From positions 992,001 through 1,056,000 of the forward strand of contig OZ037770.1 in assembly GCA_964035545.1 (NCBI GenBank): a DNA stretch of 64,000 bases, read 5' to 3'. This DNA is from Bugula neritina (lineage: Eukaryota; Animalia; Bryozoa). The notes beneath the pieces were generated by a model. It was not told the DNA's origin and searched no databases. It saw only the letters and a program-made list of their open reading frames with translations. This document shows, piece by piece, positions 693 to 7,156 of the stretch. Position 1 is the first letter of the stretch; every line of letters begins with the position of its first letter. The position numbers were made by a program, and so were the translations under genes.

Positions 693-3600
693 CTATATAC
701 AGAGTATAAGAGTTGAATATAAACCAAGAGTCATGTGTGTAATGTCTGTATACAGTCTAGTAAGTTCAGGAGTTATGTTATCTCTGTCAACTAAAACACT
801 TTCTACAAAATCTAAGGCTAACTCAGAGTGTTCTATAGCCTGTGAAACATGACCCAGGTGTAAGAGCAAGTAGGAGATGTACAAATGAACCTGAGCTAGA
901 GATTTCATCTTCAAGTTGGAGGAAGGAAGTGGCTCATAGTAACAGAGAGCTGAATATAAATATTTCCAGCACTTCCTGTACTGATGTAAGTGGAGACAAC
1001 ACTGCCCTAAGAGTTGACAGATATTAGCCCGAGTATCCTTACAGTAGTCAGTAGGTGAATGTTTGAGAGCGAGTAGTAGGAGACCCTTAGCGTGTTTGTA
1101 GTCTGATGATGAGATTAGAGTCTGAGAGAGACTGACTAACACAGTTGTATATAGAGGGAGATGAGCAGTATTACACCTATCTCTCTGTACCAGGGCCATG
1201 TTATAGCAGTGTACTGAGTGTGTATATTGACCTGTCTTATGATAAAGTCTACCCAGTTTATGGTAGGTGTCTGCTATATCTATGTGAGTGGTATTGTCAC
1301 CATGTATAGCTTTAGTCATGTCTAGAGACAAGGTGAGATAATGTAGTGACTTTGTATATTCACCTGTATCTGTGTACACATCAGCATTACCTCTATAACT
1401 GAAAGCAATGTGATTATGGCTGGTTCCTTCACCATAGACTGCTTTAAACATATCAATACCTTTGGTATAGTAGTGAAGGGACAAGGTGTAGTCTGAGAGT
1501 TTGTGATGAACTGAGGCTATGTTACAATAACTACAAGCAATGTGTGCATGCACTGCATCACTGCCATAGACAGCTAGCTGCATCTCTAGACCCTTCCTAT
1601 AGTACTCTAGTGCCTTGCTATATTCACCCATGCCACTATACACAATACCAATATTGTAATAACTACTAGCAATGTGTGCATGCATTGCATCACTGCCATA
1701 GACAGCTTGTCTCATCTCTAGACCCTTCCTATAGTACTCTAGTGTCTTGCTATATTCACCCATGTAACTATACACACTACCAATATTGTTATAACCACTA
1801 GCAATGTCTGCATGCACTGCATCACTGCCATAGACAGCTTGTCTCATCTCTAGACTCTTCCTATAGTACTCTAGTGCCTTGCTATATTCACCCCTGTTAC
1901 TATACACATTACCAATATTGTTATAACTAATAGCAATGTCTGCATGCACTGCATCACTGCCATAGACAGCTAGCTGCATCTCTAGACCCTTCCTATAGTA
2001 CTCTAGTGCCTTGCTATATTCACCCATGTCACTATACACATTCCCAATACTGGTATAACTACTAGCAATGTCTGCATGCACTGCATCACTGCCATAGACA
2101 GCTTGTTTCATCTCTAGACTCTTCCTATAGTACTCTAGTGCCTTGCTATATTCACCCATGTCACTATACACATTCCCAATACTGGTATAACTACTAGCAA
2201 TGTCTGCATGTACTGCATCACTGCCATAGACAGCTAGTCTCATCTCTAGACCCTTTCTATAGTACTCTAGTGCCTTGCTATGTTCACCCCTGTTACTATA
2301 CACACTACCAACATTGGTATAACTACCAGCAATGTGTGCATGCACTGCATCACTGCCATAGACAGCTTGTTTCATCTCTAGACCCTTCCTATAGTACTCT
2401 AGTGCCTTGCTATATTCACCCATGTTACTATACACACCACCAATATTGTTATAACTATTAGCAATGTGGGCATGTGCTGCATCACTGCCATAGACAGCTT
2501 GTTTCATCTCTAGACTCTTCCTATGGTACTCTAGTGCCTTGCTATATTCACCCATGTTACTATACACACCACCAATATTGTTATAACTACTAGCAATATC
2601 TGCATGCACTGCATCATTGCCATAGACATCTTGTCTCATCTCTAGACCCTTCCTATAGTACTCTAGTGCCTTGCTATATTCACCCAGGTCACTATAGACA
2701 TTACCAATATTGTTATAACTTCTAGCAATGTCTGCATGCACTGCATCACTGCCATAGACAGCTAGCTGCATCTCTAGACCCTTCCTATAGTACTCTAGTG
2801 CCTTGCTATATTCACCCATGTTACTATACACAAAACCAATATTGTTACAACTATTAGCAATGTCTGCATGCACTGCATCACTGCCATAGACAGCTAGCTG
2901 CATCTCTAGACTCTCCCTATAGTACTCTAGTGCCTTGCTATATTCACCCATGTCACTATACACAGTACCAATATTGTTATAACTGGTAGCAATGTCTGCA
3001 TGTACTGCATCACTGCCATAGACAGCTAGCTGCATCTCTAGACCCTTCCTATAGTACTCTAGTGCCTTGCTATATTCACCCATGTTACTATACACAGTAC
3101 CAATATTGGTATAACTTCTAGCAATGTCTGCATGCACTGCATCACTGCCATAGACAGCTAGCTGCATCTCTAGACCCTTGCTATAGTACTCCAGTGCCTT
3201 GCTATATTCACCCATGTTACTATACACAGCACCAATATTGTTATAACTACCAGCAATGTCTCCATGCACTGCATCACTGCCATAGACAGCTAGCTGCATC
3301 TCTAGACCCTTCCTATAGTACTCTAGTGCCTTGCTATATTCACCCATGTAACTATGCACAATACCAATATTGTTATAACTACTAGCAATGTCTGCATGCA
3401 CTGCATCACTGCCATAGACAGCTAGCTTCATCTCTAGACCCATCCTATAGTACTCTAGTGCCTTGCTATATTCACCCATGTCCCTATACACACCACCAAT
3501 ATTGGTATAAGTATTAGCAATGTCTGCATGCACTGCATCACTGCCATAGACAGCTAGCTTCATCTCTAGACCCATCCTATAGTACTCTAGTGCCTTGCTA

Positions 3601-6600: not shown

Positions 6601-7156
6601 TAGACTCTCCTCTGTCTCTCCTCACTGAACTCTAGAGCCAGACATCTGTTAGCTAGTCCATGAGCCTATAGAGAAAAATATGATGGTGGAGTTTCAATGG
6701 CTGGGCAAGCAAATATATTATGTATCTACAAATTAATGTCTTATAAAATCTTCACAGAGAAACCTACAAATCTGTACAAGAAAGATCATTTTTTTAATAT
6801 ATAATAGTTGTAGTGAAACATATTTAGCTTTCCATTGATGTCTTATATTACCTCATAAATACAGAGAAAAGTATGAATTACGCTAAAGAATATTGTGGGT
6901 GGTCCCATGACTCTACATATAGATATAGCTTCCTCTTTTGCAGCTGACATTTTTGCATTGTTACACTTTGTGTGAAAATTCATTGACGTCAATGAAACCT
7001 CATCAAGTTGACTATAGGTGATTTAAAAAGGCTAAAGATCAAAAAATTATAGCAGACTACCTGTAGATGATGCACCCAGTTTCTACTAGACTCGGCCTTC
7101 TTTTGGTATTTTATGGTCAGTTCTTCTAACTTTAATATATTAGTGTAGTCCTCCAT
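693..7156 (-). CDS. ~2022-aa GlnD/DUF294-like nucleotidyltransferase domain plus long TPR array; coding exons 7156-7061 and 6665-693
   Basis: The 1948-aa ORF stays open upstream to a phase-0 acceptor at 6665. It joins in frame to a phase-0 donor at 7061 from an ATG exon (MEDYTNILK...HHLQ|AHGLANRC). It has the Pol-beta-superfamily motif FAVIGLGSVARGTATPYSDLEYAFVV and many TPR units (A..Y.NIG.VY...GEY.KAL.YY.K.L). Confidence 0.85.
1551..3794 (-). repeat. Coding tandem array of 17 x 132 bp (44-aa TPR units)
   Basis: Consensus HADIAxSYxNIGxVYSxMGEYSKALEYYRKGLEMQLAVYGSDAV with an exact 132-bp period, flanked by degenerate TPRs. Confidence 0.97.

Follow-up and report, generated by a model that had tools for sequence, protein, structure and literature searches.

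What kind of enzyme does the bryozoan Bugula neritina encode at the start of the 64,000-nucleotide stretch of contig OZ037770.1 studied here (assembly GCA_964035545.1, positions 992,001 to 1,056,000; hereafter the window), and what might be the role of the long array of tetratricopeptide repeats (TPRs) to which it is joined? One two-exon gene occupies the minus strand of positions 693-7156. From the letters of the window only, an original prediction had recognised in this region a GlnD/GlnE/DUF294-like nucleotidyltransferase (NTase) fused to a very long TPR array, and this architecture has held up in our analysis, in which only a few positions were seen to vary from one repeat to the next. The N-terminal module belongs to the Pol-beta-fold NTases, and among these to the GlnE/DrrA/DUF294 clade, as its motif, its predicted fold and its sequence profile all show, and the gene very probably belongs to an active NTase-TPR gene family.

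The gene and its enzyme module

The open reading frame (ORF) at 693-6539 (minus strand, 1948 aa) stays open upstream as far as a splice acceptor at 6666/6665, where the AG (6667-6666) is preceded by a polypyrimidine tract; the single stop in the exon 2 reading (1991 codons) is the terminal one. Residues are numbered from the first codon of exon 2 (6665-6663). The end coordinate of the original prediction, 7156, turned out to be the ATG of a 96-nt first exon. Exon 2 and the region from 7061 to ~7180 are covered by contigs from four RNA-like public runs of four studies, zero contigs of these runs lie on 6680-6991 (intron) or past 7200, and the splice joint from 7061 to 6665 was found in RNA contigs of runs X3 (two contigs, side 41) and X6. 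The RNA contigs back the gene structure; the expression of paralogues cannot be ranked from them. Several contigs depart from the window at 7160, 7175, 7178 and 7181, at the 5' end of exon 1, into unrelated letters, which may reflect an extra upstream non-coding exon or an origin from paralogues.

Contamination by a bacterial symbiont was considered and dismissed in view of the G+C content of ~35%, the spliced GT..AG intron, the flanking retroelements and the 16-Mb contig. The gene is a real, transcribed animal gene. The 32-residue peptide of exon 1 recurs with 62-100% identity upstream of 12 other paralogues and partially at a 13th (L027). It is hydrophilic and, since no signal-peptide-like or membrane-like stretch can be read at the protein start, the protein is probably cytosolic.

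Using the first 489 residues as query, an exhaustive phmmer search against 1.84 billion cluster representatives returned 1007 homologues at E<=1e-3 (357 at <=1e-10, 111 at <=1e-30), 77 of which were assembled into an alignment (A1; A1 numbering is exon 2 numbering minus one). A single-sequence phmmer search against the PDB gave nothing significant (DrrA at E 0.29); the A1 profile retrieved the DrrA/SidM AMPylation domain at E 8.8e-8 in two stretches, the second one over the C-terminal helical domain. Structure prediction with AlphaFold2 (AF2) from the N-terminal 489 residues as a single sequence was unusable (predicted local distance difference test, pLDDT, 34), and with A1 as alignment it yielded a model of the enzyme module with a pLDDT of 92.8 and a predicted template modelling score (pTM) of 0.93. 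The top ranks in Foldseek, each with probability 1.00, are DrrA (E 8.5e-7), the N-domain of GlnE (1.8e-6) and the C-domain of GlnE (2e-5); NF90/NF45 are weak matches only (E 0.6-0.8). In VIA-align, DrrA reached Z 25.2 over 319/339 residues (root-mean-square deviation 4.0), and GlnE Z 19.7 with its N-terminal, deadenylylating domain and 19.4 with its adenylylating domain, whereas the next fold, that of the aminoglycoside NTases, attained only Z 7.7. The match spans model residues 1-439 and comprises the helical hairpin, the Pol-beta core and the C-terminal helical domain, i.e. a complete adenylyltransferase (ATase) module.

The original prediction had also likened the module to cGAS, OAS and CD-NTases. 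A ligand-gated synthase of nucleotide messengers or oligonucleotides (cGAS, OAS, CD-NTase or HalB type) that uses the TPR array as sensor would indeed share the superfamily fold, with the Hailong protein HalB, an oligodeoxyadenylate synthase, at Z 6.3, and it would follow a sensor-plus-NTase logic that is common in immunity. Yet no cGAS, OAS or CD-NTase chain occurs among the top 50 VIA-align chains, HalB lies far under DrrA and GlnE, and the strong structural relatives are only protein AMPylases or de-AMPylases. The attached helical domain is of the GlnE/DrrA substrate-binding type, no messenger receptor is evident, and PADLOC gave no meaningful match (the best at E 0.01 and 14 bits, none near the cut-off). 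The proposed likeness thus finds no support, and we consider a messenger synthase quite improbable. Nor does the gene resemble an NLR beyond mere analogy: no NACHT, NB-ARC or other P-loop NTPase was found in Pfam scans of the whole ORF or of a 721-residue N-terminal piece, and the phrase 'NLR without the NTPase' should not be taken as more than an image.

The stretch GLGSVARGTATPYSDLE (residues 130-146, nt 6278-6228) coincides with the Pol-beta signature that had been placed at ~6210-6290. It reads G132-S133-x10-D144-L-E146-Y, is located between the predicted strands 125-130 and 143-150 and agrees with the Pol-beta motif hG[GS]-x9-13-[DE]h[DE]h. The G-x11-D-x-D motif of GS-ATases (glutamine synthetase adenylyltransferases) and DrrA is present with exact spacing, its second D being replaced by E. 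In the profile alignment, GS-x10-D-x-E is paired with GSLAKAQATEYSDLD, which contains D110 and D112 of DrrA. The possible third acidic residue, suspected early on in GFRIDG, is D202, whose conservation and preceding strand fit a third carboxylate; it would be the counterpart of DrrA D150, a correspondence proposed without side-chain superposition. In the helical region KSDIFR...YIRTTAYL, which had likewise been singled out, K322 and R327 lie within KSDIFR and R379 within YIRTTAYL, and all three are conserved in the homologues.

Across 30 fetched paralogues, which are 22-88% identical to this copy, 48 residues are invariant, among them G132, S133, D144, E146, E176, D202, D249, D298, K322, R327 and R379. 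Among the 77 homologues (A1 numbering), G131, P140, S142, D143, G197 and P211 are invariant, and S132, T139, Y141, E145, E175, D201, G202, K321, R326, R378 and Y382 are conserved in at least 90%. The conservation of the motif residues, complete in the paralogues and complete or at least 90% in the homologues, shows that they are not chance matches. When the ratio of nonsynonymous to synonymous substitutions (dN/dS) is compared along the eight closest copies, it amounts to 0.17 in the NTase core, 0.18 in the N-terminal helices, 0.31 in the C-terminal helical domain, 0.26 in the linker and 0.45 in the first TPRs. The low ratio in the core reveals purifying selection on the enzyme. A catalytically dead scaffold, in which the NTase fold is kept as a structural or binding module, might be read from the E for D at the third motif position and from the acidic D249 reported for DrrA (DrrA numbering), which in the A1 profile aligns with a non-acidic position of the bryozoan protein. 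But D-x-E is a standard variant of the Pol-beta motif, and neither the G-S nor any of the three canonical carboxylates has changed over deep divergence, which makes a dead enzyme highly improbable.

With respect to family membership, the protein is a borderline case for DUF294 (PF03445; cut-off 21 bits), which scored 19.4 bits for the full ORF, 20.9-21.6 for N-terminal pieces, 26-29 for paralogues and 51-66 for amphioxus relatives. SidM_N (PF20879) stayed at 17.7-19.8 bits, under its gathering cut-off of 27. Of the 77 A1 members, 71 match DUF294 (E<0.01), 43 SidM_N, 32 NTP_transf_2, three DUF294_C and one GlnE (PF03710); DUF294_C was also matched in the amphioxus protein P0044. The ESM Atlas features are again DUF294, DUF294_C and SidM_N. 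The usual company of DUF294, namely cNMP-binding (cyclic nucleotide-binding), CBS and DUF294_C domains, is absent from this protein in Pfam. These profile matches place the protein in a sister clade of the SidM_N and GlnE Pfam families, as a member of neither. In NCBIfam there was no equivalog match and none near the cut-off, the weak matches being GlnD uridylyltransferases. An assignment to a known defence system or to GlnD/GlnE was dropped, as neither PADLOC nor NCBIfam gave a match near the cut-off.

Paralogues, relatives and probable gene transfer

A search of the 216-Mb B. neritina assembly with A1 gave 68 matches, ~56 of which contain the full domain, free of stops, in open frames of ~460-2267 aa; few are clearly decayed. 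The copies lie in tandem clusters, one of them including the present gene (Table 1). Copies of ~950 aa keep the NTase-TPR order, and a 2225-aa copy has 21-24 TPR stretches. Within the subfamily, exon 1 and an intron have been retained, so that the copies stem from duplicated DNA and not from retroposition. The family is multi-copy and lineage-specific, not a single-copy housekeeping gene. Three checks had been set in advance, and on each of them the original prediction stands: an NTase fold is predicted, the catalytic acids are conserved and the gene has many copies.

The taxonomic distribution described here rests on named relatives, a minority of the 1007 phmmer representatives. Relatives in the bryozoan Watersipora subatra show 39-45% identity. 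The B. neritina protein EB796_006236 is 87-88.5% identical to copies of the C5 cluster; its automatic UniRef label is 'Protein-PII uridylyltransferase N-terminal domain-containing protein'. Watersipora sequences and copies of the B. neritina genome occur side by side in at least two bryozoan subfamilies, and the family therefore predates the split between Watersipora and Bugula. Several Branchiostoma species (amphioxus) have relatives, often with two or three NTase modules per protein. One of these, P0016, has the architecture NTase-TPR-Roc-COR-'GT4-conflict'; PMC8195603 deals with the GT4 domain and the conflict setting in which it occurs. The relatives in Hydra vulgaris are of the type NTase-TPR-ankyrin. 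Of the members examined (from bryozoans, amphioxus, Hydra and Neochlamydia, as well as long unnamed ones), nearly all have TPRs joined to the NTase; the exception is amphioxus P0054.

Two or three full NTase modules with TPRs were seen in proteins of 1560-3177 aa: P0044, P0054, P0067, P0124 (Branchiostoma), P0140, P0153 and P0156. The three NTase modules of P0067 are identical in the tree. Such proteins reflect either a multiplication of modules within the gene or tandem genes that were fused by gene prediction.

Bacterial relatives were sought in one genome per prokaryotic species with the pattern TPYSD[LI]E[YF]x[FI], a scan that is hence biased to this clade. It returned 44 loci, nearly all in obligate intracellular lineages, with 3-10 copies in several genomes. 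These loci belong to Rickettsiaceae (Tisiphia, Megaera, Rickettsia endosymbionts), Holosporaceae, Amoebophilaceae and Cytophagales metagenome-assembled genomes (MAGs), Parachlamydiaceae, Rhabdochlamydiaceae and one gammaproteobacterial MAG. As many as 8-9 NTase(-TPR) copies per genome occur in the gammaproteobacterial MAG OZ257147/OZ257148 (L037, L046, L054, L062, L068-L070) and in the Cytophagales MAG OY970075 (L047-L059). This suggests effector-like families in several unrelated intracellular lineages and echoes the expansion of the Neochlamydia NEX2 family.

In a quick, unrooted IQ-TREE phylogeny of 81 domains, which has long branches, the bryozoan sequences form one clade on a long stem (SH-like approximate likelihood ratio test, SH-aLRT, 100). 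The amphioxus sequences also form one clade (100), nested among bacterial lineages, and Hydra falls inside Rickettsiaceae (99). A constraint that holds all animals together is 150 log-likelihood units worse (approximately unbiased test, AU, p 9.5e-6), the group having been chosen after the tree was seen. The animal sequences are not one clade, which suggests repeated gene transfer. Most simply, genes would have passed several times, independently and in either direction, between animals and intracellular bacteria; neither the bacterial kinship nor the likely transfer had been noticed in the original prediction. The Hydra proteins P0018 (LOC100206955) and P0019 (LOC124808396), encoded on 64-71-Mb contigs, adjoin a Rickettsia endosymbiont and Tisiphia in the tree (SH-aLRT 99); these genes look like a fairly recent transfer from a rickettsial bacterium.

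The TPR array and the possible role of the family

Pfam finds TPR_12 (E 1.8e-193) and TPR_10 (E 1.3e-169) in 19 stretches each and TPR_1 in 21 stretches. Eighteen units stand in a strict 44-residue register (residues 956-1747); with ~8 divergent flanking units this makes ~26, in line with the more than 25 TPR-like units counted in the first place. Most unit positions are fixed among the 18 units, whereas positions 8, 9, 11, 15, 19 and 37/38 hold 4-7 different residues, and positions 8-11-15-19 are spaced like one helix face. This pattern is suggestive of diversification at the variable TPR positions, short of proof of positive selection.

Taking these results together, it is reasonable to propose a protein that would be a catalytically competent, cytosolic enzyme of the GS-ATase/DrrA type, moving a nucleoside monophosphate (NMP) from a nucleoside triphosphate to a hydroxyl side chain of a protein. 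The ~26-unit TPR solenoid would select the protein acted on, or the ligand controlling the enzyme. That the array is a sensor directly gating an immune enzyme, as the original prediction had it, is at present a hypothesis. Cheilostome bryozoans would share the family with intracellular bacteria through gene transfer; tandem DNA duplication would then have given ~56 intact copies, in which array length and a few surface positions of the repeats may have diversified. A role in conflict is possible, be it innate immunity, control of intracellular bacteria or symbionts, or self/non-self recognition. The scheme builds on direct results for the fold, the conserved active-site residues, the gene structure and its transcription, the number of copies, the selection on the enzyme and the kinship with genes of intracellular bacteria; from these we infer that the substrate is a protein and the nucleotide ATP, and likewise what the TPRs do and that the family serves in conflict.

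DrrA acts on Tyr77 of Rab1 and GlnE on glutamine synthetase, in both cases on protein hydroxyls (PMC8097203). Because this holds for both characterised whole-module relatives, protein NMPylation is the likeliest activity and ATP the likely donor; by this analogy, we would give AMPylation of proteins specifically a somewhat better than even chance. The TPRs are most simply taken as the target- or ligand-binding part, since they are a near-constant partner of the NTase in animals and bacteria; likewise, the TPRs of FICD pick its target, BiP, according to a passage of PMC8065156. A conflict role is pointed to by the lineage-specific expansion into clustered copies whose arrays differ in length, by the kin in intracellular bacteria and by the association with conflict-type domains in amphioxus. 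We put a conflict or immune role slightly below an even chance. The combined reading, an AMPylase with TPR-selected target or ligand that was transferred, expanded and shows a conflict-type pattern, appears to us evenly balanced between right and wrong.

Several points weigh against this combined reading, beginning with the non-acidic position opposite DrrA D249 mentioned above. To our knowledge, no member of this clade has been studied biochemically, and we know of no activity of canonical DUF294 proteins. The N-domain of GlnE, which has the same fold, removes AMP, and GlnD transfers UMP. The bryozoan protein might thus be an eraser that removes AMP by phosphorolysis, as the GlnE N-domain does, or a UMP, GMP or CMP transferase such as GlnD, and might for instance reverse marks set by bacterial effectors. 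The deadenylylating domain of GlnE fits as well as the adenylylating one (Z 19.7 vs 19.4), the weak NCBIfam matches are GlnD uridylyltransferases, and the closest relatives among bacteria probably act as effectors of intracellular species, so that a host counter-enzyme is conceivable. But DrrA, an AMPylase, is by far the best match (Z 25.2), and TPYSDLE is closest to TEYSDLD of DrrA, even though sequence does not tell the two directions apart. An eraser or another NMP transferase is, in our view, improbable.

To these points are added three others. In the bryozoan copies, no classical immune domain (Death, TIR, NACHT) was found. Many RNA contigs deviate from the window by 1-13 letters, and the RNA coverage may in part derive from paralogues or another strain. 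Among the repeats, dN/dS is ~1.0 at the codons of the variable positions and 0.63 elsewhere, i.e. not clearly above 1, and a value (omega) of ~1 fits relaxed constraint and diversifying selection equally. The last point leads to the question whether a transferred bacterial gene has simply multiplied without any conflict role, either as an ordinary regulator with tissue-specific copies or in a near-neutral, recombination-driven expansion. Besides omega at the variable sites, the patchy animal distribution and clear bacterial kinship, the homogenisation of the arrays by recombination and a window rich in retroelements all speak for it. On the other hand, the enzyme is under purifying selection (0.17), with 48 residues invariant in copies that are only 22% identical; frames are intact in almost all copies, exon 1 and the intron have been preserved, and transcripts occur. 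Moreover, the sharing of at least two subfamilies with Watersipora means long retention. We therefore regard an expansion without conflict role as unlikely.

Genomic surroundings and comparison with known systems

The features of the gene and the tandem clusters are compiled in Table 1.

Table 1. Parts of the NTase-TPR gene (positions in the window) and tandem clusters of its paralogues (positions in the genome)
Feature	Position	Strand	Remarks
Exon 1, coding part	7061..7156	-	32 codons (96 nt), ATG 7156-7154, then GT donor 7060-7059
Spliceosomal intron	6666..7060	-	395 nt, GT..AG, phase 0
Exon 2	693..6665	-	1990 codons + stop 695-693; encodes NTase module, linker and TPR array
N-terminal long helical hairpin, exon 2 residues 1-118	6312..6665	-	AF2 helices 2-116, pLDDT mostly >90; predicted to pack on the NTase core as in DrrA
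Pol-beta-type NTase core, residues 119-262	5880..6311	-	Pfam matches to DUF294, SidM_N, NTP_transf_2; predicted strands 125-130, 143-150
Catalytic motif G132-S133-x10-D144-x-E146 (G-x11-D-x-E), GSVARGTATPYSDLE	6228..6272	-	aligned to DrrA GSLAKAQATEYSDLD
D202 in GFRIDG	6060..6062	-	likely third metal-binding carboxylate, right after a short strand (model 199-200)
C-terminal helical domain, residues 263-440	5346..5879	-	GlnE/DrrA/DUF294_C type; invariant D298, K322, R327, Y328, R379
Helical linker, residues ~441-640	4746..5345	-	no significant family match; model helices up to 484
TPR region, residues ~641-1835	1161..4745	-	~26 units, TPR_12/TPR_10 type
Array core	1527..3819	-	17.4 copies of a 132-nt (44-residue) unit, 92% alike in DNA (Tandem Repeats Finder)
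C-terminal tail, residues ~1836-1990	696..1160	-	helical-looking, no family match
Tandem cluster	C5, 6.35-6.43 Mb
Tandem cluster	C5, 15.9-16.16 Mb
Tandem cluster	C2, 32.47-32.55 Mb
Tandem cluster including the present gene	C6, 0.39-1.0 Mb
Tandem cluster	C6, 2.9-3.15 Mb
Tandem cluster	C7, 13.56-13.59 Mb

Elsewhere in the window, a long frame of a BEL/Pao-type retroelement (33178-38232, plus strand) carries DUF1759, Peptidase_A17, Integrase_H2C2 and DUF5641. An intact-looking Ty3/gypsy-type pol frame of 1819 aa (50550-56009, plus strand; RVT_1, RNase H, integrase, SH3_Tf2-1) is accompanied by additional ORFs at 56075-57163 and 56986-57453, and this block has a G+C content of 52-59%, as against 30-40% for the remainder of the window. 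A 1-kb (TAG)n microsatellite of ~353 copies (38927-39984) causes the strong GC skew at 38-40 kb. It also produces the ORF 38830-40029, a poly-Val frame of 399 aa, which we rejected as spurious.

In reviews of AMPylation, FICD and SelO are the only AMPylases given for metazoans, and the GS-ATase/DrrA fold is considered a bacterial one (PMC8097203, PMC12409994, PMC8668991). Here, this fold is found in an animal gene that is expressed, intron-bearing, selectively kept and massively expanded, with relatives in two more animal lineages. Because TPR arrays nearly always accompany the enzyme and the bacteria that carry family members are obligately intracellular, the family is a concrete example of an enzyme exchanged between hosts and the bacteria inside their cells. 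It is also a testable candidate for a new recognition-and-modification system of invertebrates, in a phylum about whose immunity and symbiont control little is known, and the enzyme domain can be tested directly at the bench because it is small and confidently folded and has clear catalytic residues. The boldest version would be a third class of animal AMPylase beside FICD and SelO, of the DrrA/GS-ATase type, taken from or exchanged with intracellular bacteria at least two to three times and comprising in bryozoans ~56 TPR-guided enzymes that recognise microbial or non-self proteins and mark them covalently. If true, this would amount to an NMPylation-based system of innate immunity or symbiont control, but at present we regard it as rather doubtful. 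The literature searched did not describe such a DUF294/DrrA-like NTase-TPR family for animals; NEX2 of Neochlamydia came closest.

FICD/HYPE resembles the bryozoan protein as an animal AMPylase with TPRs, but only by functional analogy: it has the unrelated Fic fold and two TPRs and is a single-copy membrane protein of the endoplasmic reticulum. The effector-plus-repeat expansions of marine invertebrates (TRADD-N, GT4, TPR), as portrayed in passages of PMC8195603, are alike in their tandem expansion, their combination of enzyme and repeats and their suspected bacterial origin, and GT4-conflict and Roc-COR also occur on one amphioxus relative of the bryozoan family. A DrrA/GlnE-type NTase-TPR family is not described in the passages of that paper found by keyword, and the bryozoan copies, unlike the expansions in these passages, are without a Death-like, TRADD-N or STAND module.

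Typical bacterial DUF294 proteins combine cNMP-binding, CBS and DUF294_C domains, none of which is present in the bryozoan protein, although DUF294 is its best Pfam match. GlnE (PDB 1v4a, 3k7d) has the same two-part fold and motif class, but it regulates metabolism, is present in a single copy, contains two NTase modules in tandem and lacks TPRs. With the ATase domain of DrrA/SidM from Legionella pneumophila (PDB 6yx5, 3nku), the whole module is matched, and the G-x11-D-x-[DE] motif and the flanking Y-S are shared, at an identity of only 14-16%. DrrA continues into a Rab guanine nucleotide exchange factor (GEF) and a domain that binds phosphatidylinositol 4-phosphate (PI4P) (PMC8097203, PMC12409994), whereas the bryozoan protein continues into TPRs; the bryozoan gene, unlike that of DrrA, is animal, intron-bearing and present in ~56 copies. 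Like DrrA, the nearest bacterial relatives of the bryozoan gene come from intracellular bacteria. Among these relatives is the NEX2 family of Neochlamydia, in which F-box, DUF294 and TPR are combined in 50 members (PMC4209131). NEX2 is bacterial and adds an F-box or OTU domain, and the bryozoan clade stands on its own long branch, but both families have the same NTase-then-TPR order and a large expansion, and the Neochlamydia proteins P0017 and P0024 are true homologues of the bryozoan enzyme.

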